A stretch of 64,000 nt of DNA. Source: Ramazzottius varieornatus (lineage: Eukaryota > Animalia > Tardigrada). Position 1 is the stretch's first letter. Every line of letters begins with the position of its first letter. The translations under genes were made by a program, and so were the position numbers. The stretch spans positions 1,982,478 through 2,046,477 of the forward strand of contig BDGG01000001.1 of NCBI GenBank assembly GCA_001949185.1. Direction: 5' to 3'. The notes under the pieces were generated by a model that worked only from the letters and a program-made list of their open reading frames with translations, had not been told where the DNA came from and did no database searches. Below are positions 1,085-62,238 of the stretch, piece after piece.

Positions 1085-4000
1085 TCAAATGATCGATTCT
1101 CTGTTAGGCTTCTCCAAGGGTGGCGCTAGATCAGGCGGCAGCGGTGTCAACTCTGAGAAGTCACTACCACTGGGACTGTCACTGCCGCAGATGTGCATCT
1201 CAATCTCTTGCAGCCGATGTTCCACTTCCCACTGTTGCTGGTTCAGTTTCGTATTTAGCGTACTATTTTCGGCTTCCAATTGAGCCAGTCTTTCCCGTAG
1301 CCGCTGGATCTCGGCCACAAAGTCCGCTTCGGTCGTCGAGTTCCCCACCAGACTTCGCGCATCATCCGCTGACATTGTACCGGGTGTTGTCGACCGGCTT
1401 TGACCGTTGGACAGGGACCGATGACTTCTACTGGGAACTGCTAGATGGTTGGTATACGCTGAGGTCGACGCTAGGTTGTACATGGAATGTGGTTGCGGGG
1501 AATGGTAGCCGGCGCCGGCTTGAGAGGAGGCCAGAGGAAGAGCCGAAGGAACGCTGAGCGTGGGTCGGGACATGGGTGGTGGCTCGCTTTGAGTTTGATG
1601 AAGGGATGGTTGGATGACAATGTGTGCTGTCGCTGGTGGGGATTGGCCCATAGGTTGAGACTCTTCGATGGGAGTCATACTACTAGCTGTTCGAGGTAGC
1701 CCCGAGGGCATGGACATTGCGGACTGAATGGGAACGAAAGTGGCGCGGTCCATGGTGGGATTTTCGTCCGGATGGAGATGAGGCTCGACGAGTCCGGGCG
1801 TACTTTGACTTCGATTTATAGTAGGGGTGGGACCTGTAATGGGAATGACACCTAGAGAAAAGCTGACCGTGCTTTTGATTCACATACAGGCGGTAAAATA
1901 CTGTACAACCAAGTTATGAGTAGAACGCAGGAAACTGTCACATTTGAGTGTTATGCACGTTATGGAAGAAAAACCGCACAAGTGAGTAGTAAATCGAACT
2001 GTTATAAAAAGCTAAAAAGTTTCATCGGCGCACTTTTTACTAAAATGTCGTTATTCACTTTGACTTCGAAGTGAAATCAAGCCAATTTTTCCATACCACT
2101 TTGGGCTTACCATGTTCGAGCGGACTTTTTTCATATTTGCTCAGGCGCTTTTGAGCAATCCCTTCAAGGCGAACGCGAGCTGCAGGATATTCCTGGAGTA
2201 CATCCCACATATCCTGTTTACTTAGGCAGAATAAGTCGCTGTATCCAACAGAGCGAACGGAAGCTGTGCGACGGTTTCCCAAGGTTCCCATGTTGAGCAC
2301 TGATATTTCGCCGAAGTACGAGCCGGCTCTCAGCGTAGCTAATACCGTCCTCCCATTGTCAGCCACCACTTGTAACTTCCCTCTCGCTACAATGTACATT
2401 TCTTTTCCCACTTCTCCTGCAAAGAGCCGTATCCACCATCACGAGACTGCATCGGAGGTTATCTTCGTTGTTCGTATGAGAACTGGGCAAACAAAACGTA
2501 CAACATAGTTTGTTAGAGTGGCACACTCTATCATCCAATTTCAATGGGAACGTGCGCCACTTGGGGTAACAATCAAAATCGCACGTTGGTGGCGCATTCC
2601 TATGAACCATCGCAGTGAAACTGTGCGCCACTTGAGATAACAATCTTGTACGGTTTGTTTGCTGTGCCCCCTATAGTATACCTTTTCGGCAAATGTAGTC
2701 ACCGGGCGAGAACAGAACAGGCCGAAGCCGGAGAACCAATTCGCACAAGAACCCGGCTTCGGTGTTCTGGAAGATCTCGACCCGCTTGAGGGTATCGAGA
2801 TGGACATGGATGGCGATTTCAGCTTTTAGCTTGTCCGGAAGGCACGACATAACAGCTTTTTCCTCGTCCGAAGACTTCTTGGTCAACCATAAATAATCGA
2901 ACCATTTGATAACCTTCTTCTGAAGGTGATCAGGTACGCGTCTAAGGTTCATGTAAGTCTTGACGTTATCCAGTTTGGCTGCAAGAAGAAATATTGCGGA
3001 GGAGCTTCGAGGTCTTAAGATGGCTCGATGCGAATACAAGTGAGTAATTCTCCGAGAAATAACTCTTCGGAGTACTTCAGAACTAATGGTGGGATCTGTT
3101 ATGCATGAAAGCTTCTTCGATGTCTGTTGGAAGATTATCATATTTGTGCGCTGGACTGTGCCAATATTTACTTTTTCTTCATCCGCAACAAATGACCCTG
3201 ATTATCTTGAATCTCAAGAGAGGAATCATCCTCGCGCTGCTCTCAGCGGCTGAGCCCGTCGCTCGAGAACCAGCCACAAATTGAGACCATCTCCCGTACC
3301 AAGACGAGCATTCCGTACAGCCGGCTTCCTCCGAATCCGGATTATTCATTGTCAAAACAGAATGACTTCACATACCTTGAAATTCTTTCCGCGCTGCGGA
3401 GACGCTTGTGACAATATTCGCCTACGAAATAAAAAATCGACTCGAAAGATGAATCGTAGAAAAACTCAAGTTTACAGCCCGGATCTCCGATTTTGTATAA
3501 TTTTAAGCGATGCTTACACACAAAATTCCTGTCACGCCATAATTATGATATCTGGAAATTCCTTCTGGTTCGAAGAACTGCTGACCTGTTTTGTTTTACG
3601 GGCCATCCTGTTCAAGATTGTGTTTCAGTGGCAGGCAACTTACCACATGTCCCAGTACAGTGGCGAAAAGGAGTAATCCAACGATAAGTTCCGTAATGAC
3701 AAAGATATACTCGACACGAGTTAAAGGCCGCGGAATATCACCAATATTGGTCAAAAAGAGGGTCGACCAGTACAATGAGTGCATATAATGGCGCACAGTG
3801 TCGGATTGGTCCTCGGTCTTGGCCCAGTCGGCGCGGAACTCAAAATGCGAGGATAGCAGGTAAAAAATACAGGCATTCCAATGGAACAACACCAGTAGGT
3901 AATGTATCAACACCGCACTCCGAAACACATTGGGATAATTGGTGTGCCGCTCGCTCTTGTCCAGGAAGACCCAAAATCGATAAATTTTGACCAACCGGAA

Positions 4001-4966
4001 ACCTCTCAGAGCCGAATTGAACCCAAGTGATAGATACAAAAAGTCCAACGGCAGCAAACAAAGGCAGTCCACGTAGAATAAAGTCGTGTTCATGTAATGC
4101 TGCCGCAGTTTTAGCGTCTCCGTCTGTAATACCCCATCTTCCAAATACCCGGTGCGAAAATTGAAGGCAATATCACAAATGTACAAGAAATCGGCAAAAT
4201 AGTCGAGCGGAAACCATACCACTAGATTCTGCCGGTTGATTTCTTGAAAGGAAAATCGATAAACTATAACCCACAAATTGTACAAAAAGGCGGTACTGAC
4301 AACCATGGACCAGTAATAGGCTAAACGACCGCTGGGATCAAAGACAAAGGTCCAACGACAGCCGGACCGCCGATCAGAGGATGACAACGAGGCAGCGAGA
4401 TCTTGAGCGTCACCTGTAAGCAGAGCAATTGGTCGCTGATTTTCGTTTGTGACCAGAACGTGAACAGTACGCGGGACCTGGGCAAAGAAACTCGACACGG
4501 TCATTTTCCCAAGTGGCGCACTTCTCCAGTGTTATTGTCAAAGTGCGTGCGCCACCTGGAAACTCAGCAAAGTCGGGTTTCCCGGTGTGGCGAACGATCT
4601 CAGCCAATAGGCCACTTGGGGGGACGATCTTGCCGCGTTTTTCTGCCTTGGTTTCAGTTTACCTGTCAGGAGCCTTTTCGGCCCGGACGAATAGCGCCGT
4701 GAAACCCCCGGGCTGTGCTCAAGGTCGGAGTTGGGAGAGGCCAGGCTGTTGGCCAAGTAATGTCTGCGCGCTGGTCCGCCACGCCGAGTCGCGGTCCCTC
4801 GTAATCGGTTCAGCGTCTGACTGAACCAACCACGAGGACCCGTCGACGACTTACGCACATAGACGGGAGCTGCGCTGCCGGATTGGACAGCTGCGGCAGC
4901 TGCCTGGCTCATCCGCTTGTTGTGGTGATGGATCTTGTAATCGCTGCTGTTGCTCAACCGATCCAT
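1085..4966 (-). CDS. Cyclic nucleotide-gated channel alpha subunit (CNGA-like), 6 coding exons
   Basis: In-phase GT-AG exons 4663-4966, 3644-4413, 3376-3421, 2682-2978, 2111-2416 and 1085-1851. They encode S1-S6 ([29 protein letters not shown] pore), the C-linker ([18 protein letters not shown]), the CNBD ([20 protein letters not shown]...YFGEISVL...[19 protein letters not shown]), a coiled coil and a C-terminal ESII. Confidence 0.95.
2486..2662. repeat. Palindromic element, double unit, in CNG intron 2417-2681
   Basis: Outer arms gcaaacaaaacgtacaa / ttgtacggtttgtttgc; two cores, each with a 25-bp spacer. Confidence 0.9.
4480..4647. repeat. Palindromic element, double unit, in CNG intron 4414-4662
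   Basis: caagtggcgcac-N25-gtgcgccacc plus a second, internally deleted unit. Confidence 0.88.
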
Positions 4967-5422
4967 GGTCTTCCCTCCCTGGAGATATGTGAGACGATCA
5001 AAGGATGGGTGCTACCATCGACACGCCGGCCGGCATGAACGCGGAAGAAGGACCTCCCTCTTGATCAAGCGCTGATCCTGGCGGTCCCAAGAAAGCGAAT
5101 TTTTCCGGGCTAATGGCTCGCAGTGCGATTATCCTTCACTACTACGCATTCTGCGCTGTCGATTAGTGTTACAAAGAGGAGTGTTTACTTAAGCGACTTG
5201 GCGCAAATGTCGAATGTTGTCGCGGAGTGGAACGTCTTCTTTTTGATACAGTTCCCATTGAGCTTCCTACAAAAGAGCAAAAAAAACCATGTCAACGTAT
5301 AGTACAGTAATAAACCAGTAGTAGAGAATACGCGTTGAAACCATCGAAGCACTTCGTTACTCGTGAAACAGACCACGTTCGCTCATCCGTAGAAATAAAA
5401 GGGCATGATAGTATGGGAGGAC

Positions 5423-5526
5423 AGCAAACCAAGCTCACAAAACCGCTATTTTGAGTGGCGCACACTCCCAGCTACAAACGATGAAAGCGCAACTCGGTAT
5501 AGCGATCCTGTGCGTTTGGTTTACCG
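5423..5526. repeat. Palindromic element (degenerate), upstream of the CNG ATG
   Basis: gagtggcgcac...aagcgcaactc with partial outer arms. Confidence 0.7.
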
Positions 5527-6401
5527 AACTCCCATATGGGGTATCGCCAATGCCTCCAAACAGTTAAATTAAAATTAGACGGGCTGTCGGTTTACCGTTG
5601 ACCTATAGTACGTACGAACCAGAACTCCGTTGTTTCCGTTCGATAATCAAACGCGAACTTCAGAGGGAACGACTGGACATGTAAGCTGATCACGCGCTGT
5701 AACTCAGTCTAGTTACAAGCCGTAGCACGTAGCGAGCATATCCGTCTAGCTATTCGTCAAGCATTGCATTCTTCCGGTTCGTTAGCCCAAACATCAGCAC
5801 TTTGCCAGGCATGGCACGCCATCAACCCTCTCAAGTCTTCCCATAATGCTCGCAGATTCTCGTTCCATCCACGTCAGACCTGTTCCGCATATATCTTTCA
5901 AGCATATAATTTGCCAGATAATGTATCTCGACAATTTGCCGCAAGTGAATGCCTTGTAACTTTCCTATGCTCTTACGGTCTTACCTACGTCACAAAAAAT
6001 TCTCGTACTCATGTGGAACAAGTGAACTTCTGTCGGAAGACTCAACATGCGGAAGATCAAGACACCGAAGCCATGCATGCGTACTGCGTGACGATTATCC
6101 CACTAAGTCAAACACAAGCCCAGCCACAGCTGGAACATACTATCTACCGCCAACACATCCTGTTTATGAGCTTGACAACAAAGGCATTCGTCTGGAATGA
6201 TCTGTAGCTTGTACTCCACCTTCTTACCAACGTTATCAAACCAACGTTGCCCGAGCAATCAATTCTGACTTGCTTCCTTGTTCGCGGCGCTTTAACTGGT
6301 CTAACTTTGAGACTTTGACCAACTGACCCGAGCTCGATGGTCAACGTTTGCTTCTGAGATTATGCTGAATATTTTTGAGTGCCTGAAGGTATAGGGGAGG
6401 C

Positions 6402-6510
6402 CGTCAAACGAAACGCCCAAGATCGTTATTCCAAGTGGTGCACGTTTCCATTGGTATTGCTCGAGAGTATGCGTCTTACAATAACAGTTTTGTCCGTTCC
6501 GTCCGCCGAC
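6402..6510. repeat. Palindromic element
   Basis: caagatcgttattccaagtggtgcac-N25-atgcgtc...ataacagttttgtccg. Confidence 0.8.
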
Positions 6511-7959: not shown

Positions 7960-8061
7960 GAAAGCGAACAAGACGGTCGTCTTGAGTGGCGCACACTACC
8001 ACCCAACAATAACGAGTAACGTGCGCCACTTCGGACAATGATTTCAACCCTTCGTTTGACC
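7960..8061. repeat. Palindromic element
   Basis: gagtggcgcac-N26-gtgcgccactt. Confidence 0.88.
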
Positions 8062-11000
8062 AGCTCCCCAATCTTCACGGTGGAAAAAGCTTTCTTAAAG
8101 TCTTCCCTAACATCTGAACCAGGTTATGCCATTCTCTAACATGATTTGAGTCCAGACAAACCACGCAGGGTTACTCAAGAGTGTAGAATGACAGGGACAT
8201 TTTCGCTCGTACTGGCTTCGTATGGGAAGACAGCGCTATATCACTGCCGTCAACAAGGCCTGTTCCGGTTCTTTCTGCCCAGTTCTGCTTGGCGGCTCGT
8301 TTTGTACTAAACAGATAGCACCACTTCAGCAGATCGGAAGCTCCTGCTGCTGCGAAACGATACACATCTTCCGATGATCGAGGACCGGAAGACGGCAATT
8401 GAGAAGAAAAAACGAAAAAACGAACTCTCGAGGATCTCCTTCATGAAAGAAGCTGTTAGTGTTCTGCCCAACCCTAAGAGCGTAGCTAGGCCTAATCTCC
8501 AGATGTTTGCCTCCAAGAATGCAACGATCGGTAATTTATTTCCCCGACCAGTTTTCATGAGGAGGGTGTGTTTTTGTTGTGAACGCAGATCGAACGGTTG
8601 AATATGAAAAAGGACTGTTATTTTTAGAAATAAGTAACGAGGAAGAAAGGAAAGTTTTGACAGGCGTACAAAGTACATGAAACATGCAAAAGGAAAACAA
8701 TGGGGAGCTTGTGGCAGATTGACGTGCAACAGGGAATACAAAGTTTGGATGCATGTCGTAACGGGGTAATCCGGGGCTGGCAAACGCAACAAGGAGGAAG
8801 TTGGTCAACGTAGCGGCGTCAAACGGAAACGCGGAGGGATTCTAGCACTGTGCAATTAAGGTCTATAAAGCACTGTTTGGACAGTGTTGTAGTGGCAAGC
8901 TCGACGTCAGCGCGCGCAGAGACCTCATGGGTTCATATTCAGCAGCCCGTAAATCGCTTTGTGGAGTGAGAAGCTTGTATAAATCTACAGAGGAGCGTGA
9001 CCAGCTCTTCCTGCTTACTCAACGGTCGCCTGGCCGAGATCGATGATGGTAATCAGGCCTCTTTAGCACGTAAATGTCCCGCTGCAAGTGAGACGGGAAC
9101 TCTAACAGAAGGGATAATATATCCTACCTGTCCCTGTCATCCTGATCGCCACATTTCCGGAGTGATATAGTGCTGGATAAAGTCCCTGTAGATCTACTTC
9201 GCTGCAGGTCGCATTACAATCAAAGCAGGCAAAGGTTCAATTCCCAGATAATAACCCGTATAGGACCGCAGATCAAGTTGCACAATCGTCCTCTCCGGCG
9301 TTATGACGATCAACGCGCCGGATGGATCGCGTAACATCTGTTCAACACATCAGAACGGCAGACACTTGTAAGCAATCCTGGAAATTACACCCCCAGATTC
9401 ATAAATATATCCGCCTCCGATGAACAGATGTGTCTTACATAAATTCCCCCTATTCATCAAGTTATTCCAGCACCATAAAATCAACAGCTCGATGTTCCCA
9501 GATGAAGTTGCGCACAGCAAAGCGCAAGGTTTCCAATAGAACTGGTCCTCATCAACATGCATACGCAATGCAGAGAACCAATCCACGAGAATCAGAAAAA
9601 AACGGAACTCCAGAAACGTGTTTTTTTTCTGGAGTGAGCTGGTGGAATAGGATCACAGTTTGGATAAGGTCGGAAGCAGAAGACACAGTTGTTCATCAAA
9701 TAAAAGAAGGGCAGCGCTAGTCAGTAAAAGAATTGAATATTCTCATTCAATTGTGCTCGGTAATAGAATAATCAACCATCAAAGAGGAAAAAGGCAAGGC
9801 AATTCCATCACATGCCATAACCATGCAGCAAGAACAGTTCAGAGCCTCCAAGCAGACGGCGAGTACATTCTCCCCCTCGAAAAGCGCCGCCAGCTACAGA
9901 ATACATTGGGAGCATGCATCAGTAATTCTATTTTTTCTCTTCACGTATCCCCTCTAGCCGTGTGGCGCAGTTCATACAAATTTCCACTACTGTACTCAAA
10001 ATTGTCAGAAATAAAAAGAAAAAAGAAACAACGTGAAAGTCAAAGATCCTTGCTTGTTGGGGACAACGAACCCGAAATACATATGATGCATTGGGTACCA
10101 CGCTTATGAGCGCGAAGTCAAAGTACTCCAAAGCACTGTACACAGATACAAGCACAAGTGTCTGCTTCTTCCCTTCTCTTCTCTATAGCACTAACTCAAG
10201 GGAAGAAAGGAAGGTACGATAGAGGCCAGACTACTCTACACCGGAAGTAAGCAAACCATTGCCAGGCCGGATAGACCCTGATGCGGGGGCGGACTGATCG
10301 TCCACATTTATAGTACGTTCACGGCAGAGCTTTGCGGCTATTACAGTACGACTACAAACGTCTAACGGCTTTTCTCTTGACTCTTAATTTCTGCCCCAAA
10401 ATACCCTGGACTGTGTAAGTGGAAACAAATGAAGCAAACATCGCAAAGTACCCTCCAACTCGGGCCTTCTCCCTGGCAGCTTCCTCATCGGCAAACCTAC
10501 AGTACGGACGCACCTACGACTTCGCTACAAAGAACAGCAATACCTTTCGTTCCTTCTTTGTCGCTGCTAGGATTACCCTGTGACCGACTTTTCCCTCATC
10601 CTACGTAACGAATAAAGCTGCAGGACGTTTACGGGTTGATTATGTCTGTGAACGGAAAAACTGTCCCAACTGTCCCTTTGGTGTACGTTAGGACACAGTC
10701 CATTAGCCATGCTAATCATTTAAGCTCTGCTTAATAATGAACTGTGGTTAGGCCTGTTCATTTTGGCGTTCTGCTTTATTGTCCACTGGTGTGAAAGACC
10801 GTTGTTGAAATTACGCGTTCATTTTCGACGACCGAGTTGATCTACTGTAGTTGATTTTAGAGCGAAGGACTTTAGTTGAATTTCCTGAATATTTCAGGAG
10901 TATTTCGTAAACTGAGTGGCCAATTACCATTAGCGAATCCCCATTCTGCATGTCAGGCGTTCGTTGAGGTTTCCTGGCTTGTTTACACAATGTCAAAGCC

Positions 11001-12175: not shown

Positions 12176-15100
12176 ATGAACGACGAGGACTTCATCAAGC
12201 ACCAGCAGTTATGGTTCCGACCATTACTGGCCCGTGCTTTCAGCTCCGCTGCGTTGAATGGTGCCGCGGACTGGAAAAACTACCTGGTAAGGGATTCTTC
12301 GATTACATGCGGTCCGATCCAGAGCTCTCCGAATGGCATACTGTACATGGACTTCTTTTGTTTCCCAGTTTCATTACTTTAGTGGGGGACTAACACCGTC
12401 CTACATCTGTGGAATCGATGCAAATGCTAGCATATCCGGTGTTCTCGACGTCGCTTCGGTGACTCTGCAGTTCGCCATTCGGCACAGCTGCAGCATAGAG
12501 GTGAGGTTGTGATTGTCCCAAAACTAAAGTCCACATACCAATTTGAATCTTATTCTTCTCAGGTGCAAAAAATCGTTGTACAGTTGGACGATTTACACCG
12601 TGATTTGACTGGATGGGTTTCCGGGTCTTCAGGAATCAACCTAGAAAATCAGACTCAATACTTCTTTGACTATGTTGTGGATTTCATGAAAACGTACAAC
12701 CTGGCATCGGGGAACTTGAAGCTGTCGCCGTTTGATCAACATGCTTGGGATCAAATGATTTGGTACGAACTGGAAGCCAGTCATCCGACTGTTAACTCAA
12801 GTGGCGCACGTTTTCATTATGATCGGTCGAGAGCCCGCGCTACTTGGGGAAATGATCTGGGTGAATTCATTTGCCGGCGTCCCTTATTGCTCGTACAAAG
12901 TAGAAACAATCTTAATGACGAAGGCTCGATACACAGTGCTGATGTGTGCATAGGCACCACTGGTCCAAGAAGCAGCAGAGTTTTATTGTTGACGATACGG
13001 ACGACGAATCCTCACCTTCAAACTTCGTTGATGGGCAAACTCTTGTGTCGACCACGCGAGGAGGCATGCTGGAATATTTCCGTTCTCGAGATGACCAAGC
13101 AGCCTTACTGAACACATTGACATACAAGAGACTTACGGCTCCGTTATCCGAGAAAGAAGACATAACGGACGCCATGTACAAGGAGAAGTTTGAGCATCTC
13201 CTACGCGAGCTCGAACAGCGCCGCCCATCGGTTGGGCGTCTGCCATCCAGACCATTCCGCAGTGACCTCATCGCGCTCGGTGCCGTTCCAGCTCCGCTTT
13301 CGTCCTATAAAGACAACGCTCTCAACAACATCATGAAACATTTTGGCCCGAAGAAAGCCCCAAAGCCAGTTATCTTCACAAAATGGGGGCTGGTCAAGCA
13401 CGAACCGGTCAAGAGTCGAAACGACAGTCGGTATGCTAAAAGTCGCGCACGGAAGGAAATTGCGAGAAAAGCCATCGCACCAGTGTACGTTAATGGGGAA
13501 AAGATCGACGATTTCTGGACGTTTGCTGGTGGAGATTCATGCGTGGTTCCGGGTAGCGATACCCTTGACTTTGATATCCGACCTGCGAAATCGAAACAAG
13601 CTACGAAGCACAAGATAGAAGCTTCCCGTGAAGCTGGAGGAAAACAGCAGATTACTGAGCCTATGTTCCAATCAGCCAATCAAGCGGAGAATATTACGGA
13701 GCAGCCTGTCGTTCCTGTGGATGAACTGGTCGAGAAGGATGCCCATCGTGTAATGAGGGAAGAAACCGAGCAGTACCCCGGAAGTGAGACGGAAGATGAC
13801 GCTGAGCTTTTGGATGACTTCGGGGACAGCTTAGCTGTGTTGGATGAGACCAACATACCATGGAACGCTTCATACTCATCGGATGCCAACAAAAAGGCCA
13901 TAGACTCAAAAAAGGTTTGTTCAGCAATTTCAGCGTTCACTTTCGAGCTGTTTTTGTCTTACGCTCCGTAATACTCAGACTACGTGAAGCAGTGGCTTGA
14001 TTGGTGTTTTGTAAGCCCAGAGGGAAGACTCCTCTTCCGGAAATTCCTGTGGCTGTAAAACGGCTGGAACCACGGAATTCGAAAGCGACTCGACTGGACC
14101 AGGAGATCGCACGAGATGTTCGCAGTGGTTTCAATGCGCTAAACTTCTTGTCCTTTGCACTGTTGAGGTGCGCAGCGTGGATCAGCAAGTCGGAAATCTG
14201 GCAGTCCGTCCACGCGTTGCTGGACTCCGGGGCGAAGTACGAGTTCACTGATGGACAGTGGACACTTCGAGGGGTACCAACACAGCCTAAGCGTTTACCC
14301 AGGACTGCCCTGCCACTATTGGGTCAATGTTATGATGCCGACGGGCACCCGCTCTTTCTTCGGAAAGTTTTCTTGGTGCAACCGAGCACATCTTCGTTCT
14401 CATCGGTATAAGCATCTGCGCTTTGCCCATTCTCAACCGATAGCATTCTAAACGTTGCTTTGACAGTGGTTCTCCGTGGAGTTGTGTTATACCATAGCGA
14501 AGATTATAGAAAGCCTTCCTTACGCTTCGGAGCCGTTTGGCGGACAGGTATCACACTTCAATTCTTTCCCTAACGTTTCTGCGTAGTAAACTTCCGGGTT
14601 GTAGGAAGCGCGAACAGCGTGGTTGGAGTGCGGTAAATGTTGTCCAAGAATCACTTCCCTGATGGACGTCCTTACTTGCATCGTGAAGATCTTGAACGAA
14701 ACTCATCAAGACTGTCCACTCGGATTGTTCCTGAGTACGAATCAACTGTTCAAACGCAATGCGGTAAGCAATGCGGAATATTGTTGAGCATGAAACAAGC
14801 ATTGATTTCCTGCAAACTTTCAAGGAAAATGGAGTTTATATGATGGAAGACCGCGCAGCCATGTCATCCGAGGACCTTTCAGCCTTCTATGAGACTCTGC
14901 TCACCGAGTTCCCCAGCATCGAATTTATAGTCGACGCATTTGCTGACCATGTAAGACTGTTGTCTGACGCTCTTGTGGACAGCTCAAATATTGATAGATC
15001 CGTCACATTATGTTGCTTCACAGGACCAATGTGGGGACCACTATCTGCGTCACTTGGAAGAACTCGGACGCTGTCAGTTTTACCGCAGCCGGAAAGTGGT

Positions 15101-22791: not shown

Positions 22792-22906
22792 TTATTCCAG
22801 CTTAGTTCTTTACAACGTATCATAGATTATTTTTGAGCACAAAGTCTGCTTGAATGCTGAACATACGGAGGTTCGTCCTAAAAGTCAGCGTTGTTATCCG
22901 GGAGGT

Positions 22907-23035
22907 GGGCAAACAAAACGTACAAAACGGCAAACAAAGAGTTCGCTACTTCAAATCTCAAGTGGCGCACGTTTTTATGAAACTGGCTGGAAAAGTTTGC
23001 CAGTCATGATAATTAACTTGTATGTTTTCTTGCCC
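22907..23035. repeat. Palindromic element downstream of the ADGB stop
   Basis: gggcaaacaaaacgtacaa...caagtggcgcac-N24-gtttgccagt...ttgtatgttttcttgccc; left arm partly duplicated. Confidence 0.8.
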
Positions 23036-23323
23036 AGCTCCCATTTGACTCTTCTATTGTTCCGCTGAGTTTCTGTCTTTCCTGAAACTGATTATGAATC
23101 TGAATAGAACAGTCAGTTTACTTGTTGCCGAGTATTTTGAACACCGGGGCCGGAGTAGATCCACGTGAGAAAGCTACAAACACGATCGAAGCATTGTACA
23201 CATTACAAAAATAAGAGACACGAGATCAGCTGCTCGCATTGGCGTCAACCATAATGAGCCAGCGCAATCGTACTTCCGCCGTGATGATAGACGGAATCAT
23301 TGTTTACTGTATGTGTTACAGAT

Positions 23324-47557: not shown

Positions 47558-50500
47558 ATGCGGACAACATGGTCTGATTTCGGACGCGCATGTCGGACCG
47601 AGTTTCGTATCTGCAAGTGTGTGGGGATTTCGCTGATGATCTTGATGATGTTTTATCATTGTCACGGTCGACACGTAATTGATCCCGACGGATTAACGTT
47701 TCGTAATTCCAATACTTCCGCCTTGAGAATGTTTCACGATCAAGGTGGGCCTTTTCACACTTCTGTATACCGAAGATCTAATTATGCCGCAATAGTATCA
47801 AAAATAGAAAAATCACTGCATCCGCCAGAGCACGTTTACGTACAGGAAGTTTCTACTGGGTGGTTAAGGGATAAACCCTGACTACTCCCGGAGATGAGCT
47901 ACGTACGTAGTATGACGAAGAGTGGCGGATACAGCGAATTTTTACAGTATGTACGTTTCCTTTCTCGAATGCGAGACCGGCAAACAATGTTTTCTCCAGG
48001 AGCGCTCTTCCAAGTGACACACCTTTGCAGCCAGCAACATTGAGAATGTGCGCCACTTGGAACAGAAACCGGACAAGATCGTTTTTCCAAGTGGCGCACT
48101 TGTCAAAATAATTGGAAACGTACGCCACTTGGGACAACAATCTTGTCGCGTTCGTTACGCGCTTTCCACATTAATGTCTGAGATTCTTGCATATTCCGCA
48201 CAAATTTTCTTTAATGGAAAACTTTAGGCGAACGGGTTTTTTTTCTTCTGATATTGGCGTCGGATCGGTGGTTCCGCGCCGCTAACGCGATAAAAAAAAG
48301 TCATGGTTTTTAGGACACAACTTGAAAAAGCCATTAAGCGTCGATCGATTTAACGACCTTGTCGGGCTTTGTCTAGGTGGCCTTTCCATGTCAAAGTTGT
48401 CTACTCCAAGCATAACGAAAAACTCGACCCGGGCCAGCACTGACAATCTTTCCAACCGCGAAGTTCTGCTGCGGAATTTTCTTCTGGACAACGGCAAAAC
48501 CGTTCCACCTGTAGGTCTTGCCCATTTCATTTTACAAGATAATTTGTTCGGAAAATTTAAAAAGAAAATCATAAAACAATGAATAATGCTTTCAGCAGAT
48601 CACGATCTCGAGTGACGCACGCTTCCATCGTTATTGGCTGAGAGCGTACGCCGCTTGGACAACTGAACAGAATTGTTTCCCAAGGTGACGCACGGTTTCG
48701 GTGTTATTGGTCGATAGTGCGCGCCACTTAGCAAAACGATTTGCGTGATTCTATAATTCTCGGTTGCTGACGTTTGAGTTATACTCTTCAGAATAAAATG
48801 ACAACAAAAAGACATATCAAAGACGAGGAAGATGACAGTCCCGAGTACTGCGGAGACGGAATCGTTGGTGAGGCTGAAGACTGTGATTGTGGAGGTGTGA
48901 CCAATTGCTCCTTGTCGGTTGGCGGCAAGTGCTGCGATCCGTTAACTTGTCGTCTCCTTCCCGGTGCCCAATGCGCCGCTGATGGTCCCTGCTGTAGTAA
49001 GGAGTGTCAGGTGTGTCAAAGCATGAAGTTTCACTTTCAGCCGTGACATTTAACCCCCAGCTCGAATACGCCGTATAGATCGATACTTGCATGTTTGCAG
49101 TTCAAAGGGAGCGGTCAAGTGTGTCGACCTATCCGAAACAGCTGCGATCTGCCGGAAGTCTGTTCTGGCTCCTCGTCCCATTGTCCGCCCGACGCATTTC
49201 GTCGCAACGGGGACCAGTGTACGGCGCAGCAGGGATACTGCTTCAAAAGACAATGCATCACACACGACCAGCAGTGCGTGTCAAGTAATGGGCGCAATTA
49301 ACTTTGACGACTGACTTTTGACATCACGTCTTTGATCACCTATCTCGCTTCGCGCACAAAAACCCGACAGCCATGTTAATTTTTACTATTAACTCAACAG
49401 GAAGTTTTGAAAACAAAAGGTAAAAAAACGACGGGTGTGATGCGTCTTGAAATAGTACAGATAACTGTGAGCAGCTCGATCGGGTGCGCGAAGCCGATAT
49501 ATAGGTGTGACTTTTGGTATTGATGTACAAGCAGTAAATTCTTACCATGGCTTGTTTACTGTAGTATGGGGATTTCATAGTACTTCGGGGAAGGAAGACT
49601 GCTACAACCAGTTCAACGCACGTGGTTCTTTCAACGGTAATTGCGGGTTGCTGACGGATGGCGTTACATATCGATTCTGCAAGAAAGAGTAAGAAGGTCT
49701 TCCCTACTTGACGAACTGCAGTAAAGAATAAGGGCGATTCTTATTCTTTCAGGGATGTTATGTGCGGAGTACTACAGTGTAAAGGCGGCGGGTACACGCC
49801 ATCTGCTTCGTCTCAAAGGTACTTCGCCACCACCATCCTTACCAACGCGAGCGGCACGCTCGTCCAATGCAAGTAAGTGAAAGCAGCTCACTTGTTGCCT
49901 CACCAGGTAGAAATCCTCTCGATCGAGTTCTTCTCTTGGCATGATGATAAGTAATGCACTTTTCTCGTCTCTTTCAGAACATTCACTCCGGAAGTCATCA
50001 CGTCCCAAAGCGTGCAAGTCACGTTAGTTCAAGATGGCACGAAATGCGACCACGAAAAGGTCGTTCACTTCCTCCTTTCTGATTTTGATCCATTTTAAAC
50101 CATTTCGGCGAAAGTAATTCCTATATTAATTTTTGCCGCTTGGTATAGATTTGCCTTCGAAATAAATGTATGCCTTTCAAGCACCTCCTTCCGGAATTCG
50201 ATTGCCCTTCCTATTCTTCAGTCGCCACCTGTTCTGGCCACGGGATCTGTACCGACCTGAACACCTGTTTCTGTGAGAGCGGATATCACGGAGAAGACTG
50301 TTCCTCCTACAACAACCACTCCACGCAAACGCTGGACAGACTCGCTGTCCAGGACCTACGTCACTTCCGGCGAGGGATGGCGCCACTGGACGACAGCAAA
50401 CGCCGTAAGAGCCCATCACTTCACTTGGGACCCAGGCAAACGGACTCGACACGATGGTTTGTCCAAGTGGCGAACACTTCTAGTACCATTTACTAGATGC

Positions 50501-50840
50501 GTGCGCCACTGGAAAAACAATCTTGCCGACTTTGTTGGCTCACCCTTCCTCACTTCTCCCATCCTTACTCTTATCGGCTAACGTTTCCTTTGATTCAGGA
50601 ACGAACTATAACCAGATAGTCAACAACGAAGCTCTGCAACTCGTAGTGGTCATCATGTCTGTGGTTTTGCTGGGTGCGACATTAGGCATCATGTCTTTGA
50701 CATGTTGCAGGGGACACTGGAAGAGCCAGCAGAGACCCAACGTGGCCTTGGTGGGGATGAACAGCTTTGCGGAGCGGTCTTTGAGGAAAATGGACAAAGA
50801 GACCGATGACCCGGGCTGGTCCTTGACTAGCTCTGTCTAA
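47558..50840 (+). CDS. ADAM-like membrane protein (disintegrin, Cys-rich, EGF, TM); no metalloprotease domain found
   Basis: YCGDGIVGEAEDCDCG...CCDPLTCRL, CRPIRNSCDLPEVCSG, GNCG, DVMCGVLQC, VQDGTKC, CSGHGICTDLNTCFCESGYHGEDC and TM LVVVIMSVVLLGATLGIM; hydrophobic signal-like segment in exon 1. Confidence 0.85.
47977..48160. repeat. Palindromic element, double unit, in ADAM intron
   Basis: ccaagtgacacac-N25-gtgcgccacttgg followed by ccaagtggcgcac-N20-gtacgccacttgg. Confidence 0.9.
48590..48770. repeat. Palindromic element, double unit, in ADAM intron
   Basis: gagtgacgcac-N25-gtacgccgctt and ggtgacgcac-N25-gcgcgccactt; both spacers contain gttattgg. Confidence 0.88.
50434..50540. repeat. Palindromic element in ADAM last intron
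   Basis: ggcaaacggactcgac...caagtggcgaac-N25-gtgcgccact...caatcttgccgactttgtt. Confidence 0.88.
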
Positions 50841-51153: not shown

Positions 51154-53543
51154 TCAAGCAGCTTGTTGTTCTCGTGCCGAGGTTTGGGTAGCGAGCCTTT
51201 TCTTCTCGCGATAGGCATTCTTCTTGTCGATAATGTTGGCCAAAGCGGCGTACACTTGTGTGACTACAGGTGGTGGGTCGTCTACAGCGTCAACGAAGCA
51301 ATCCTCGCCCTCCGCTTCGATGGAAGACTCGAGCAGCAGTGAATTCCTTGTAGTTGAAACCTCGCTCGGACCTTCTGGAGACAGTCGGGACATAGTCTTA
51401 CTGGATGACACGTTGACTGCAGGTGCTGCTGGTACCACCACAGGTTTCTGTCTCAGCTGAACGCCATTTCCACCGTTGTTCGTAGGCTGTGATTCCGGTT
51501 TCACTTCCGGCTTGGTGTTGTCACTGAAACTGCTGAAACCCAAAGGGGCGGTGGTAATGGTCGGCGTGAAAGGGTTCTCCAAATCTTTTGCATCAAACAC
51601 TTTGGTCGCGACAGTGGGAACATCGCGTCGGGTGGCAGCGTGGTTCTTGGGAAGATTGTCTGCCAATGTTGGAGGCTTTGCCTGAAGTGGGTAGAAATTA
51701 AAACTCATTCATAACAAGAATGCCATATTTTGATATCTGGGAGCTGGGCATTTAAACGTATGTCTAGTGCTTCTCACAAGGCGACTTGAGTTGGTGCACT
51801 ATTCCAGCCAGAGATAATGGAAGCGTGCGCCACTTACGCTAACGATCTTGTACGTTTCGCTTGGCCAGCTCTAAAACACAGTAGGAAAAAGTATCTTCGG
51901 AACTTTTGGTTCAGGTACCTTGTGGAAGCGGAAAGAAGCAAACCGCGGGATAGAAAAGCTCTTCACCGGCTTATATTCCTGCACAGCTTCGGCGTCCAGC
52001 GGCACGCGCCCGCGGAAGAAGGCGTGGTTTTCTATGGCGAACCTCCACAGTAACTTGGCGTCTTGCTCGCTCTTGCAGCGGAATTCGCATTTGTGATCGG
52101 TGTAATGAGGACCGGTTGCGTTGGCTGGATTGACTTGCCGCACGGTGAAGCAGAAGGTGCTTCGACGGCACGACATCTCCAGGATCTGGTTCCACCGGTA
52201 ACGTGTCACTTCCTTGTGGGTTCTTTCCTCAGGCACAGAGACTCCACGAGCTGAGATACCAAGATCCACCATGGAACTATTTGAATCCTGGAGCATAAAC
52301 ATTATCGTCGAGATAAAATTAGAGAAAAAGAGAATCGTACATGCCTTGACAGCAAAGCGGAAAACTCCGAACAGCGGTAGTCCTTGAGCGTGCTCAAGGT
52401 ATGTCACTTCCGCTTGCGCGATCGTCAAACCGCTGCAACAGGAACAAGCTGATGAAATTCAATATTACTGGGTCATTGACATGAGATTAAACAGCGAACG
52501 GATTTCCTGCGACACCTTAAATTGAATCGGTGTCTTTCCATGACACGTCGCTCGGTTTCGGCCGTTCTGTACTTGGCCGGAAGTATGTCCAGCGTGGAAA
52601 CGTAGTTGTCCAAATGCAGTGCGGGGTCGAAGGACCCGAGGTGGATCTGGACCATGAGGGCGGCAAAGACGATGAGGTCTTGAGTTGTTATTGGCAGTCT
52701 TCAACGAGGAAATGGTTGAGATGGCACAAAGCGCTCCAGTTCAAACACAAAAAGCCGTTGATCTACGTACTAACCTTCCGGAGAGGATATCTTGTTGCGT
52801 TTGTAAGATGATAAAGTATCTAAACAGGGGATTAAGATACTATTATATTCTTGCATGGGAAGAAGAACCTTAACTAACTTCGGCTTACCTGCTCATCGAG
52901 TTGTTCAACAAAGAAGGGTGTGTCGGACAAAACTTTACTCGGAAACAAACACTTTCGAAGCCTGCAACAAGGAAGTCCTACAGTATCTTAACGCGCTCCT
53001 CGATCGGCAGGACTTGTTCAAAACGTTAACACCGATATACCTTTCAGCTGACTTTTGACAGGCTTGTGCGGCTTCAGCCATTTCGTGGTCTGGGTACTTC
53101 CTGATGGCATCGAAAGACCAAAATATTCCTGGTGGTCGATGTGGAGGAAGGTGCAAATACGCTCAAGCAAATACTGTGGCAAGGACTTTTTCTACATAAT
53201 CATGCAAAAACCATCAAATTTCACCGGATAACTTCCCGAGTGGTAATTGTTGAAGACGTACGTGTATGGATAATAGACGGACATAGACATCTACTCTGCT
53301 TCTTACCGGAATAGAAAAGTCCGCCAAGCGGCTATCCAGGAGAGCAACGCGGACCACAATGTCAACGGATCCATCGGACTTCGAACCCGACGAGCCGGAA
53401 GTACCTCTGCTGGCATTTGTCTCCGACACAGGGACGACAGCCGTCGCGGAAATCTTGAAGAGACCATAACGTTCCACGTTCTCTTTGACCACTTTCGTAA
53501 GCTCAGTTTGCATCACGTGGACAGTGTGCTTCTGAGACCCCAT
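51154..53543 (-). CDS. FERM-domain (band 4.1-like) protein, multi-exon
   Basis: VRVALLDS, ICTFLHIDHQEYFGL...KWLKPHKPVKSQL, VQIHLGSFDP, YLEHAQGLPLFGV, YRWNQILEMS and AKLLWRFAIENHAFFR. Confidence 0.9.
51746..51866. repeat. Palindromic element in FERM intron
   Basis: gttggtgcac-N25-gtgcgccactt...aacgatcttgtacgttt. Confidence 0.82.
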
Positions 53544-55646: not shown

Positions 55647-58424
55647 ATGACTACTTATTCCGGACAAGCTCTGGACAGCTGGATCTCGGGCACCGCTACT
55701 CGCCTGTCAATCCCGCAAGCCTCAGGAGTCAAGTCCATCCAGAACTCCGTCCAAGCCAACATGCCACTGTCTGTGCCACCTCCCTTCGACCCTTCCGACA
55801 AGAGCTGGAAGGAGAAGCTTCTACCCACCAAGGATTGCCGTACCAAGACCGAAGTAAGCTTTCTGATCACCCGAAGTATTCTTTCTTTCATACCTGTCAC
55901 TTCCGTGAATTTTATTCCAAGCTTATCCTGAGCTTCGGGCTGTTTTCTTTCCTTTCCTTTCAGGATGTTACCAAGCGTGTAGGGCTGACTTTCGAGGAAT
56001 TTGGCTTGAAACGGGAGCTGCTGATGGGCATTTTCGAGGTTTGGCCTTTCCAGTCTTGAAGGTTGCGGAAATCTGAGCAGGAAGTAACAGTGTTTTTGTG
56101 TTTCCAGATGGGTTACGAAGTTCCATCGCCCATCCAGGTTTGGCTTTTTCTTTATTTTCTTCCTTGTACTCTTTTCTTGGATATTCTGTTCTAACGTCAA
56201 CGGCGGAAGTGTTCTCCGTGTAGGAGAAGGCCATTCCACACGCCTTGAATCCCGACCAAAGAGATGTGGTGGCTCGTGCTAAGAACGGAACCGGAAAGAC
56301 GGCAGCCTACTTGATTCCCGTTTTGCAGAAGATAGACACAAAGGACCAGTCCATCGGTCAACCTCAAGGTACGGTATCGTTCTCCGTTTTCCCCTCCTAA
56401 ACTGGCTGGTTTGACTGTATGAATCGCGTGGCTGAGAGGTGAAATGCGGGACTGAAGAGTTTGTTTCCTTGTAGCTCTCATCGTGGTGCCCACTCGTGAG
56501 TTGGCTCTCCAGACGTCGGCCATCTGCATGGCGCTGGGCAAGCATCTCGGTGTCCAGTCCATGGTCACCACTGGTGGAACCAATCTCCAACAAGATATCA
56601 TGACACTGGGACAAACAGGTAAGCATTTTCTCTAACAGATTCAGCTGAGTTGATCGAGAAAGTTCTGCATTGGATCATTGACTGAGATAAAACAATTTCC
56701 GTACCGGAAGCACAAACTGGATCATTTTGTTTTACAGTGCACGTCATTGTCGCCACACCTGGACGCATTGCTGATCTTCTGATGAACGATTATCGAAAGG
56801 GATACGGCATGTACGGTCAACCCATCCTTCGCATGGACAAGTGCAAGATCTTGGTTCTGGACGAGGTAAGACTTTTTCTGCTATGGGTTTCGCTGGTATT
56901 TGGGACGTCAGCAGACGAGCGTGTCAGAACCTTATCAAGTGGCGCACGTCTGCGCCATTATTAGTTGTAGACGTGCGCCACTTGAAATAACAATCTTGCA
57001 CGTTTTGTTTGCCGGCCTCCCATCTGTCCCTGTTGGTTGGCTTCCGCTCTCTCAGCTTACGGATCCCACGCTCGTAACCCATGCTGAGCATTCTTTTTGC
57101 AGGCGGACAAGCTGTTGTCGCAGGACTTTGCGGAGCACGCGGATCTCCTGATGGACAAGTTACCCAAGGATAAGCAGGTCCTGATGTTCTCTGCCACGTT
57201 TCCGGTCTCCATCAAGTCCTTCCTCGTAAGTTTGACTCATTTCACGCTAGTTTCTCTTGCGTGTTTCTGATTAGCTTTCTCGTGATGCTGTGATCATTAT
57301 CAGGCTTCCTTTTTCTTCTGTTTGGCAGACCAAGTTGAACAACTATGAAGTGATCAACCTGATGTCCGAGCTGACGCTGAAGGGTATCACGCAGTACTAC
57401 GCATACGTTCCCGAGGCCAAGAAGGTTCACTGTCTCAACACTCTCTTCCGCAAGCTCAACGTTAGCCAGTGTAAGTTTCAAATTGCTTATTCTGTTCCAA
57501 GAAAATTCTCTGCATGTTTCACAGTCGAAATTAGGAGGATTTTGTCGACTTTCGGGTACTTCGATCTTTTGAGGCAAAACGGAGCATTGATTTTTGGTTT
57601 TTCGTTTCGTAGCGATCATTTTCTGCAACAGCGCCCAGCGAGCCAGCCTCTTGGCCCAGAAACTGAACGAGTTGAAGTACTCGTGCTACTACGTTCACGC
57701 TCGCATGACGCAGAATCAACGCAACAAGATCTTCCATGACTTCCGTACCGGAATGATCCGCAACCTGGTCGCAACCGGTCAGTGCTTTTTCCTTCAATGA
57801 TGTTCAGCTCATCTCCACAGTTTCTTGAATGCATCGTGTTGTCACCGCTCTCTGATCGAGTTTCCCGTTTGTAGATTTGTTCACTCGCGGGATCGACATT
57901 CAGTCCATCAACGTGGTTGTCAACTTCGACTTCCCACGCATGGCCGAAACCTACCTCCATCGCATCGGACGCTCTGGACGCTTCGGCCATCTCGGTCTAG
58001 CCATCAACCTCATCACAGATGACGACCGCGCGACCATGCACCGCATCGAGCGAGAACTCAACACGGAGATCAAGGCCATCCCCAAGGAAGTCGACAAGCG
58101 CCTCTACGTGGCTGAAGAACAGGTTCTTATACCCTGGTCTCAAATAATGTTCCCGGACTTTTTCGCTTTTCTAACTTTCACCAGAGCGAGAATTGTGTCA
58201 AATCATTTCAGTGAAATAGTTACTCATGTTTTTTTCAGGTGAATTTGGATAAGGACTTCCTGAACGCAGTGGCAGCTGGACGTTTCGCATCGGACCACAC
58301 TTCCTCGTCGAGCTGTGGTGAAGAACTGAAGAAGGTCCAGGAAGGTATGTCCAGAGTTCAGGGAGGAATGCAAGGAATAAACGAGCGTGAGAACACGATG
58401 AAGCAGGAAGTCAGCTCTTCATAA
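55647..58424 (+). CDS. DDX6: DEAD-box RNA helicase DDX6/Me31B/CGH-1, multi-exon
   Basis: [39 protein letters not shown]|[36 protein letters not shown] and [15 protein letters not shown]. Confidence 0.93.
56904..57016. repeat. Palindromic element in the DDX6 intron that splits the DE|AD motif
   Basis: tcaagtggcgcacgtct...agacgtgcgccacttga (17-bp perfect stem; core spacer 25 bp)...caatcttgcacgttttgtttgcc. Confidence 0.92.
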
Positions 58425-59046: not shown

Positions 59047-59181
59047 CCACTGTGACAGCCGACCGTAGTGTGGTGCTTGTGCAACAACGACTTGGTATAT
59101 TTGCAGTTTGTTGTTTTGCTTTCCAACTTCCAATCACTGATGAGCTGCTGAAGCGCGCGTTGCTGGAAGGAAGAACGCCGT

Positions 59182-60605: not shown

Positions 60606-60899
60606 NNNNNNNNNNNNNNNNNNNNNNNNNNNNNNNNNNNNNNNNNNNNNNNNNNNNNNNNNNNNNNNNNNNNNNNNNNNNNNNNNNNNNNNNNNNNNNN
60701 NNNNNNNNNNNNNNNNNNNNNNNNNNNNNNNNNNNNNNNNNNNNNNNNNNNNNNNNNNNNNNNNNNNNNNNNNNNNNNNNNNNNNNNNNNNNNNNNNNNN
60801 NNNNNNNNNNNNNNNNNNNNNNNNNNNNNNNNNNNNNNNNNNNNNNNNNNNNNNNNNNNNNNNNNNNNNNNNNNNNNNNNNNNNNNNNNNNNNNNNNNN
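60606..60899. other. Assembly gap (N run) flanked by poly-C tracts
   Basis: Ns with C homopolymers on both sides. Confidence 0.98.
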
Positions 60900-61274
60900 C
60901 CCCCCCCCCCCCCCCCCTGAGTCTCTCTTCCATCTTCCTCCAGCTCCAAGTCATGTCTAGAGCTTCTCCCGTGGAGAAAGAAGCGGTGGAGAACAGAGCG
61001 AAATCAACGGAGCTTGTCGTTGTTATTCTCGTCGATCGCTACAAACATCACAGAGCATGCAGAGAATCTGATTCTTCGCAGGCATTGCCAGCATACAGGT
61101 TACTTGGTGCTGAGCTCGAAAAAGACGAAGTAAAACAGATACTATTCACCCCGATTGAACCGAAACCGTAATTGCTCAATTCTCGATGTCTTCTTTCAGG
61201 CTGACTCGATCGTTTCTACGTCCAGAGTCTTGCGAAGGATGTCTGATTCGTCCAGGAAAAGTATCTCATTGGGA

Positions 61275-62238
61275 TCAAGGATACCAAGGTTTACGGAGGT
61301 AAGTATTGACTAGAAGATCTTGTAGTCCTCGGTCCGCTGGCTGTCTCGAATCAACAGCAACACCTCCGTAGGGCATACCGCCTATTCCTCCGTAGAAGGG
61401 CTGAGCACCCATGACGCCCATCCCTCCATAACCTCCTCCGTATCCGGCTCCATAAGGAAGGCCCACACCGACACCGCCATACACTCCCGGATAGCCACCG
61501 ATGCCACCTAGTCCGCCTGTTCCTGATAGGCCCACGGACCTGTCATAGGCTAAGGATGGGGAAGCGAGACCTGGACGATCTACTACCCCACCGTAGATCG
61601 AGTTCGTGTCGGTCCCGCCATAAAGACCTGCTCCGGCAAGACCGTTGCCGTATCCCAACGAGTTGTAGCCGAGTGCGCTGCCGCCGCTGTACTGGAACGA
61701 TCCATAGGGATTTTTGTTCTGAGGATTTCGCCAATAACCCAAGAAAGGGTTTCTAGAAGTAAAAAAATAATAACTAGCCGTCAAATAGATTTTGCCACCG
61801 GCAAAACGGCACAACAAAAACTTTTTATTATAAATTATAGGACCAAAAAATAGGGCGTGCGCAGATGAACGCAACCAGATCGTTATCTCAAGTGGCGCGA
61901 GTTTTCTTCGTTATTGGTTGGAAGTCTGCGCCACTTGGTTAAACGATCCCAAATAACGTCTGCAGTGTTGGTTTCCTGGATGGCGTACCCGAAAGCTTGG
62001 TCGTAATAGTCGGATATGGCTCCCCCTATTGGTCCAGCACCTCCTGATTGTCCTACGAAGAGGAAAGACGAGGTTAGTGCGTCACTTGGCCCCTCGGAAA
62101 TTGTGCCCCGAACCGATACAGATGGCTTTAACCAATTTGTATCTCACCTACACAAATAGGTATCCGCCGAAGAAGGAAAGCTAAACAGGAAACGGAAAAG
62201 AAGGCAGAAATACGAGTGGTCAAGGAATTCGAATGCAT
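61275..62238 (-). CDS. Secreted Gly/Tyr-rich structural protein (cuticle/eggshell-type), 3 exons
   Basis: Exon 1 MHSNSLTTRISAFFSVSCLAFLL... (signal-like), exon 2 GQSGGAGPIGGAISDYYDQAFG, exon 3 with GGY/YGG repeats; splice phases are consistent. Confidence 0.7.
61860..61963. repeat. Palindromic element in Gly-rich gene intron
   Basis: gatcgttatctcaagtggcgcga-N25-ctgcgccacttggttaaacgatc. Confidence 0.88.

Follow-up and report, generated by a model that had tools for sequence, protein, structure and literature searches.

The window analyzed here, a 64,000-nucleotide stretch of the Ramazzottius varieornatus genome, contains among others a cyclic-nucleotide-gated-type channel gene, an androglobin-like gene, a SPOP-like gene, and an ADAM-like gene, and dispersed through it is a repeat of ~123 bp (GGGAG...CTCCC). 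A profile search recovered 28 units at 24 loci spanning 2472-61948 (Table 1), the same figures given in the original prediction, whose consensus sequence was also correct. The consensus derived from the window is almost perfectly palindromic, with arms consisting of two ~56-nt inverted repeats flanking a 9-nt loop. Each arm includes one inner box, CAAGTGGCGCAC, and the two boxes are inverted and 25 nt apart; this 12-bp core had also been predicted, and matches to it with at most one mismatch number 30 in the window versus 0.29 expected. The assembly gap at 60606-60899 sits in poly-C sequence, bordered on either side by C runs, and is clear of all copies (the closest being 56896-57029 and 61844-61948), and no result needs continuity across it.

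Table 1. Copies of the palindromic element in the window; a slash marks an exon/intron junction
Positions	Copy	Setting	Model intron and junctions	Flanking ORFs, domains, and hairpin
2472..2673	compound, 2 units	intron of minus-strand cyclic-nucleotide-gated-type channel gene; profile match	2417-2681, 265 nt, AAG/GTATAC and TTTGCAG/G	downstream exon begins at cNMP_binding profile position 16
4464..4661	compound, 2 units	intron of same channel gene as 2472..2673; profile match	4414-4662, 249 nt, CAG/GTAAAC and CTTACAG/G	Ion_trans in downstream exon
5405..5542	full copy	likely intron		ORFs merely 37-57 aa
6386..6522	full copy	profile match		ORFs under control level
7960..8074	partial copy	profile match		
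12785..12887	truncated copy	intron or 5' of start codon		joinable ORFs 360 and 999 nt; one ORF reads through copy
17350..17496	copy	intron of plus-strand androglobin-like gene		ORFs 376 and 797 nt; Peptidase_C2 in upstream exon
18288..18426	well-kept copy	androglobin-like intron; TSD AAAT	18238-18453, 216 nt, AAG/GTAAGG and TTTGTAG/C	ORFs 799 and 809 nt; hairpin z -9 to -10
19303..19435	copy	intron splitting Androglobin_II domain		Androglobin_II profile positions 19-49 upstream, 56-104 downstream
21537..21659	copy	plus-strand intron; profile match	21494-21759, 266 nt, AAA/GTGAGT and TTTTACAG/G	downstream ORF 1029 nt
22895..23051	copy with internal insertion	probably intergenic or 3' region between convergent genes		no joinable ORFs; next ORF 23324-23929 on opposite strand
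26244..26383	copy	likely plus-strand intron	26184-26433	ORFs 346 and 518 nt
28695..28838	copy	intron between MATH and BTB exons of SPOP-like gene	28644-28911, 268 nt	Pfam MATH_2 end upstream, BTB downstream
38154..38293	full copy	likely intron; host strand ambiguous		
40237..40368	full copy	profile match		
42555..42692	best-kept copy			short ORFs; hairpin z -7.5 to -8
44107..44247	copy	likely intron		joinable ORFs 286-317 nt
45492..45558	core-only fragment	likely minus-strand intron		joinable ORFs 330 and 285 nt
47966..48170	compound, 2 units	within ADAM-like gene region; profile match		
48596..48778	compound, 2 units	directly upstream of Disintegrin exon		ORFs 260 and 265 nt; Disintegrin domain within 48780-49043 (Pfam)
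50418..50544	copy	intron following EGF exon (Pfam match) of ADAM-like gene	50405-50598, 194 nt, GCC/GTAAGA and GATTCAG/G	
51732..51877	decayed copy	intron following FERM_C exon, minus strand		ORFs 581 and 547 nt
56896..57029	copy, both boxes perfect	likely intron	56866-57102, 237 nt, GAG/GTAAGA and TTTTGCAG/G	
61844..61948	truncated copy	profile match		

The element has the properties of a MITE: it is non-coding, nearly all inverted repeat with ~56-nt terminal arms, far below the limit of ~600 bp, flanked by a 4-bp target-site duplication (TSD), and dispersed in high copy number. In 264 kb of unselected DNA, the profile search found 75 loci, which amount to 11.8 kb or ~4.5% of the sequence, and genome-wide there are 452 perfect box pairs versus none in the control; no other repeat in the R. 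varieornatus genome is as abundant as this family. Copies are only 75-86% alike, so the family is old.

A curated repeat library for R. varieornatus (Peona et al. 2024, Mob DNA 15:10, PMC11071193, supplement 3) includes the entry ramVar1-7#DNA/Sola, with a length of 123 bp, a 4-bp TSD, and 56-bp terminal inverted repeats (TIRs), as well as the sister consensuses ramVar1-0, -6, -9, -15, -16, and -23, which have the box in common but vary in the outer arm and loop. The consensus derived independently from the window agrees with those of the ramVar1-7/ramVar1-0 group in termini, arms, box, spacer, and loop, and sequence, length, TSD, TIR, and species all correspond. Judged by this comparison, the window palindrome is the ramVar1-0/-6/-7/-23 group of the published library and is already known, not new. 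The element itself shows no difference from ramVar1-7; the intron bias and the better-kept box are additions made here, and the main text of Peona et al. mentions neither introns nor a better-kept inner box. No Rfam family matches the element, and two scans of metagenome contigs with a strict box-pair pattern found no match. With a loose pattern 25 metagenome contigs did match, but these are GC-rich chance hairpins in which the arms are absent.

The duplication at the insertion sites follows the pattern AWWT. It is perfect in 8 of 33 copies versus 1.9 in shuffled pairs (ATAT three times, ATTT twice, and AAAT, ATTC, and AAGT once each), the middle two bases agree in 16 of the 33 versus 3.9 expected, and the flanks on both sides have A-W-W-T composition. 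The original prediction had seen no consistent TSD and was mistaken on this point, while its proposal of an old MITE family holds, given the library match, the AWWT duplication, and the likeness among copies. Sola2 transposons (Bao and Jurka; PMC3627910) have AWWT TSDs, and the AT-rich 4-bp duplications ATAT, AAAT, and ATTT together with terminal inverted repeats are shared with the window element; however, the TIRs described for Sola2 are 12-21 bp, whereas the window element is nearly all TIR. Sola2 elements are mobilised by a Sola2 DDD transposase from an element with matching termini; no such transposase or long autonomous partner was found, and assignment to Sola2 is made from the TSD alone, in the library as here. 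Within the part of the library file covered, ramVar1-7 is the only Sola entry.

Introns were called with an ORF and splice-signal test made here, separate from the official annotation, and the exons of spliced genes were queried against Pfam one by one; ORF joining without splice-signal rules has a false-positive rate of 40-70%. In the ORF-joining test, 14 of the 24 loci reach the 95th percentile of the control versus 1.2 expected, and several of these are backed by Pfam domains split or adjoined across the copy. The earlier count (about 20 intronic loci spread over 12 genes) is upheld to this extent, but the copy at 22895-23051 looks intergenic, the one at 12785-12887 may lie 5' of a start codon, and other loci are flanked by very short exons. 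At 12785-12887, the homologue P0001 aligns only from 12943; the homologue search with the exon at 12946-13968 returned a single 270-aa ENA protein rather than the R. varieornatus gene model itself.

The intron enrichment raised in the original prediction is borne out, as insertion points lie in short introns at 2.3 to 5 times the frequency seen for random AWWT sites (p<1e-6). At T=200, detectable short introns contain 31% of insertion points versus 7.5% of AWWT sites (p=3.5e-9), and the figure for the reversed sequence is 2.5%. Where good splice signals allowed a host intron to be modelled, its length is 194-268 nt, in keeping with the predicted ~190-290 nt. Candidate element-free introns were for the most part false positives and were left out of the comparison. 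If the element is excised in silico, an intron of 40-110 nt with its own splice sites is left (51-110 nt in the well-modelled cases). Copies mostly entered short introns already present and roughly doubled their length, and the element explains a second intron size class of roughly 200-270 nt.

Introners (for example PMC12130899, PMC11282704) are MITE-like DNA transposons that, like the window element, occupy introns of many genes. If the copies were introners, bringing or completing splice sites as they inserted, then their presence in introns of many unrelated genes and the distinct length class of the host introns would follow. An introner is itself the intron, however, while the window copies lie inside older introns and supply no splice sites: the residual intron retains its own GT and Y-tract-AG, which argues that these copies are not introners. 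Copies lie 1-60 nt from the 5' splice site and 27-100 nt from the 3' splice site, with neither spacing constant, and the element ends (GGGAG/CTCCC plus AWWT) are without splice signals. No paper connecting introners with Ramazzottius was found in the literature search, and the explanation is scarcely credible.

The near-perfect palindrome and the location in introns are also what would be expected of a pre-mRNA hairpin retained for splicing, which would join the intron ends and make the effective intron shorter, as had been suggested. Fresh copies do form strong hairpins, with energies of -60 to -68 kcal/mol and z from -7.5 to -10 for both strands, but decayed copies are no more stable than shuffles (z of -1.5 and -2.5) and pairing has not been kept. 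At mirrored positions there are 1265 one-sided changes, and the 140 complementary double changes compare with 107 expected, so that compensatory change of the kind that preserves pairs in structured RNA is not seen. Copies show no significant bias in orientation with respect to their host genes (12:5), and before insertion the host introns already possessed splice sites and a normal length. The hairpin reading is largely refuted and very improbable.

The inner box is the one part of the element that does not decay like the rest. Because detection with the arms only gave just 14 copies, copies were detected with one half of the element and conservation was measured in the other half. With ascertainment removed in this way, identity is 84% in the box versus 70-71% in the arms, and divergence is 0.115 versus 0.20-0.25. 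The core had been described as far better conserved than the arms; it is better kept, but only about twofold. Likewise, the claim that this is the reverse of the usual MITE pattern is correct in part, as conservation of the termini does not exceed that of the arms (leave-one-out consensus divergence 0.21 versus 0.20-0.25). Apparent strong conservation at the extreme ends was an artefact of alignment sliding, as the leave-one-out value for the termini shows. Base composition does not account for the box difference, since arm G/C positions are conserved no better than A/T positions.

Two readings of the box can be weighed. The first is a domesticated cis-element, in which the paired boxes are bound by a host protein (chromatin, insulator-type, or transposase-derived) and selected in thousands of mostly intronic copies. 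Box divergence about half that of arms, termini, and spacer, even in the half unused for detection, is consistent with this, as are the fixed spacing of ~25 nt and the absence of any base-composition effect in the arms. The difference also persists after subfamily clustering, which leaves arm divergence well above the box level; since clustering did not lower the arms towards the box, there is room for constraint on the box after insertion. Against domestication, changes per copy in the box are Poisson-like (mean 3.0, variance 2.5) with no class of perfect copies, and both boxes are perfect in only ~2% of units. The motif is nearly absent outside the element within the window, and selection across some 30,000 sites would have to be very weak per site. 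The second reading, that the box is a site required for transposition, is no worse a fit than host use: all library subfamilies have precisely the box in common, as expected of a transposase site, and the box decays evenly. This reading predicts arm mutations common by descent, but among 72 sampled copies the surplus of similar pairs is only modest (31 at an identity of at least 0.78 versus 0.9 expected), and uneven copy age could also explain such pairs. The domesticated element of the original prediction is unsupported, the box being kept evenly and in all subfamilies, and is unlikely. It is doubtful, more specifically, that a host DNA-binding protein, possibly from a lost transposase, recognises tens of thousands of mostly intronic boxes; if it did, weak selection on binding rather than transposition history would explain the half-rate decay of the box.

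Beyond the library identity, TSD, age, copy density, and excess in existing short introns documented above, the copies are very probably the dead remains of a non-autonomous Sola2-type DNA transposon (MITE), surviving mostly in pre-existing short introns, with the box as the transposase site. Each ~123-bp copy would have inserted by cut-and-paste at an AWWT target, duplicating it. A compact genome may tolerate a 123-bp insert in introns, provided that it is clear of the last ~30 nt ahead of the 3' splice site, so copies would survive mainly there; insertions into exons, promoters, and UTRs would be purged, and intergenic copies would be lost more readily by deletion. If the transposase needed the box, then only copies with intact boxes would have kept multiplying, and for this reason the box would carry about half the changes of the remaining element.

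In compact animal genomes, such as that of Caenorhabditis elegans, palindromic MITEs or foldback-type elements are present in introns. Those elements are short, non-coding, nearly full palindromes, very numerous, and tolerated chiefly in introns and gene flanks, as here; however, they belong to other superfamilies, mostly Tc1/mariner with TA TSDs, and, unlike them, the window family by itself makes up ~4.5% of the genome sample. With the family already catalogued in a curated repeat library, its value as a discovery is small, and the element is ordinary save for an inner box that decays at half the usual rate. Neither the bias towards short introns (2- to 5-fold) nor the halved decay rate of the inner box appears to have been published. 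Extrapolated from its density, and assuming that 60-80% of loci are intronic, the family would occupy roughly 1/6 of the introns of a very compact genome, and gene finders and motif searches applied to the R. varieornatus genome should mask it.

The palindromic element dispersed through the window is already catalogued in the curated repeat library of R. varieornatus, where the consensus ramVar1-7#DNA/Sola, listed as complete at 123 bp with a 4-bp target-site duplication (TSD) and a 56-bp TIR, has the same sequence (Peona et al. 2024, Mob DNA 15:10, PMC11071193 supplement). Well-kept copies run from GGGAG to CTCCC over 120-124 bp and form a near-perfect palindrome, with arms of approximately 56 nt that each contain the box CAAGTGGCGCAC. 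The box-to-box distance is 25 nt and the spacer is a short stem around a 9-nt loop, CCAATAACA. With one mismatch at most, the 12-bp core GTGCGCCACTTG has 30 matches in the window compared with 0.29 expected, and shuffled sequences come nowhere near this number. A profile built from the window copies and iterated with nhmmer found 28 units, which after merging give 24 loci in the interval 2472-61948, a count identical to that of the original prediction. Across the genome searched (55.8 Mb in 200 contigs, with the window at C1:1982478-2046477) there are 452 perfect box-spacer-box pairs and no occurrence of a control pattern. In a 264-kb sample not selected for the element, comprising the window and twenty 10-kb pieces of contig 2, 75 loci cover 11.8 kb (4.5%), which extrapolates to approximately 16,000 loci and 2.5 Mb genome-wide. 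Pairwise identity between copies is 75-86%, and comparison of copy with copy found no young ones. Four compound loci look like products of slippage or unequal exchange inside the palindrome rather than of nested insertion.

Several relatives are in the same supplement under less specific names, with ramVar1-0, -16, -23, -6, -9, and -15 listed as plain DNA or Unknown (PMC11071193). The box is present in approximately 57 entries of the library file and is common to all subfamilies, with the outer arms and loops varying among them. The first-round RepeatModeler family numbers 0, 6, and 7 suggest that the family is the most abundant repeat of the genome. All first box occurrences in the file fall within its R. 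varieornatus part, no short consensus from Hypsibius exemplaris in that library contains the box, and the library of each species masks the other species poorly (PMC11071193); together these entries point to a family specific to the Ramazzottius side.

The original prediction reported no consistent TSD; however, a 4-bp duplication is present. Apart from this point, the original observation stands. Among 33 distinct copies with both termini anchored, the four bases outside the element are A-W-W-T at both ends. The flanking 4 bp are the same at both ends in eight copies compared with 1.9 in shuffled pairings, and the middle two bases, which are uninformed, match in 16 of the 33 compared with 3.9. 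The TSDs seen are ATAT, ATTT, AAAT, ATTC, and AAGT. Sola2 elements have AT-rich 4-bp TSDs, written AWWT (Bao and Jurka, PMC3627910), and the same form in the window element gives independent support for the Sola class assigned in the library. The element is an ordinary, old, already catalogued Sola2-type MITE family, so that the more mundane of the two interpretations first offered, an old MITE family, was right, and the alternative of a domesticated cis-element is not favoured.

Approximately 20 of the 24 window loci had been placed in introns. Individually, 14 of the 24 pass a test of ORF joining, in which a GT...AG gap, up to 130 nt wider than the copy on each side, links two stop-free stretches in frame; these rank above the 95th percentile of controls made from reversed sequence, compared with 1.2 loci expected. 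In an excision test applied to all 75 loci, each copy was removed and the insertion point checked against predicted short introns, defined as 40-220-nt gaps that link two stop-bounded ORFs, each T nt or longer, and contain GT[AG][AT], a pyrimidine tract, and YAG; a residual intron of at least 40 nt with its own splice signals was demanded. At T = 150 nt, 44% of elements fall in such introns, compared with 19% of random AWWT sites and 9% in reversed sequence; the corresponding values are 31%, 7.5%, and 2.5% at T = 200 nt and 20%, 4%, and 0.8% at T = 240 nt (p-values from 5e-7 to 4e-9). After correction for power and false positives, these values place most copies in introns, in line with the majority originally proposed. 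Exons, introns, and intergenic DNA make up 35%, 22%, and 43% of R. varieornatus bases, so introns are 34% of non-exon DNA (PMC5531438). The intron excess is real and apparently undescribed; the word "intron" does not occur in the main text of Peona et al. 2024 (PMC11071193). Flanking exons were searched against Pfam by reference, one exon at a time and without joining. Exons adjoining copies other than those at 2472-2673, 19303-19435, and 28695-28838 match Peptidase_C2, Disintegrin, EGF, and FERM_C as single exons.

Host genes and individual element copies in the window
Feature	Position	Strand	Observation
Cyclic-nucleotide-binding ion channel gene	2058-8440	-	Pfam, single exons
Androglobin-like gene (calpain domain and Androglobin_II)	16952-22788	+	Pfam, single exons
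SPOP-like MATH-BTB gene	28494-29577	+	Pfam, single exons
ADAM-like disintegrin/EGF gene	47507-50837	+	Pfam, single exons
FERM-domain gene	51157-52458	-	Pfam, single exons
Copy, compound locus	2472-2673		1.5-2 units joined via shared boxes (profile matches); precedes exon starting at cNMP_binding position 16, in channel gene with Ion_trans (Pfam)
Compound locus	4464-4661		1.5-2 units joined via shared boxes (profile matches)
Compound locus	47966-48170		1.5-2 units joined via shared boxes (profile matches)
Compound locus	48596-48778		1.5-2 units joined via shared boxes (profile matches)
Copy	18288-18426		TSD AAAT at both ends
Copy	19303-19435		Interrupts Androglobin_II: upstream exon matches profile 19-49, downstream exon 56-104 (Pfam)
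Copy	28695-28838		Between MATH and BTB exons of SPOP-like gene (Pfam)

In the nine best-modelled window cases, host introns are 194-268 nt long, with 1-60 nt between the 5' splice site and the copy and 27-100 nt between the copy and the 3' splice site. An introner was ruled out since an intron of 51-110 nt with its own splice signals is left after excision in these nine cases. Such residual introns indicate that copies entered pre-existing, ordinary short introns and approximately doubled their length. Copies can nearly abut the 5' splice site, yet none of the nine lies within approximately 27 nt of the 3' site; removal of insertions that harmed the branch point or pyrimidine tract would fit this copy-free zone. 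Separately, the open frame 12509-13111 reads straight through a truncated copy at 12785-12887. The sole homologue found (P0001, ENA, 48% identity; 12943-13917) aligns only from 12943, which may place this copy 5' of the start codon rather than in an intron.

The core had been described as far better conserved than the outer arms. Since use of the box as a query inflates its conservation, one half of the element served for detection and the other for measurement. Identity to consensus in the measured half is 84% for the box, 70-71% for the arms, and 66% for the spacer (n = 67), while leave-one-out divergence is 0.115 in the box, 0.20 in the outer arm, 0.21 at the termini, 0.25 in the inner arm, and 0.27 in the spacer. 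The box is better kept, but only about twofold relative to the arms (0.20-0.25); this half-rate decay is real and apparently undescribed. Base composition was rejected as its cause because, within the arms, G/C and A/T positions do not differ in favour of G/C. Maintenance of the proposed pre-mRNA hairpin was likewise rejected: at mirrored positions, 1265 changes affect one side only, and complementary doubles number 140 compared with 107 expected, an excess due mostly to one subfamily-defining pair; decayed copies fold like shuffles. The mirrored box columns 46 and 82 are asymmetric across all oriented copies, with G46 kept in 95% and C82 in 74% (T in 22%); the change from C to T at column 82 is of the G:T wobble type, affects one strand only, and may represent a variant of a subfamily.

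Weak host selection on the box would also produce half-rate decay, but is improbable as its explanation. Changes in the box have a mean of 3.0 per copy and a variance of 2.5, so that no class of protected copies is evident. Arm divergence stayed as high when the 72 copies were clustered; a sample of that size is far too small to reveal common ancestry in a family of 16,000 loci. The preferred reading is that the box was required for transposition, so that only copies with an intact box would have gone on multiplying; given a MITE, the chances of this are judged about even.

The window also holds other inverted repeats. At 11752-11943, a pair of 46-nt inverted repeats (76% complementary, separated by 100 nt) corresponds to the ends of ramVar1-62#DNA/TcMar and represents a second MITE family unrelated to the element. 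A 31-nt pair (90%) at 43428-43629 matches the ends of ramVar1-217#DNA/TcMar and overlaps open frame 43557-44063, taken as a flanking exon, so the exon may cover less than the full ORF. The 23-nt inverted repeat at 30138-30211 (91% complementary, 28 nt apart) is also unrelated. The assembly gap at 60606-60899 lies inside a poly-C run, with 16-18 C on both sides, is touched by no copy, and has no bearing on the other results; these borders indicate that it is probably a long homopolymer or hard-to-sequence tract, not a junction of unrelated pieces.

The family does not represent a new system; its intron excess and half-rate box merit a line in a genome paper.
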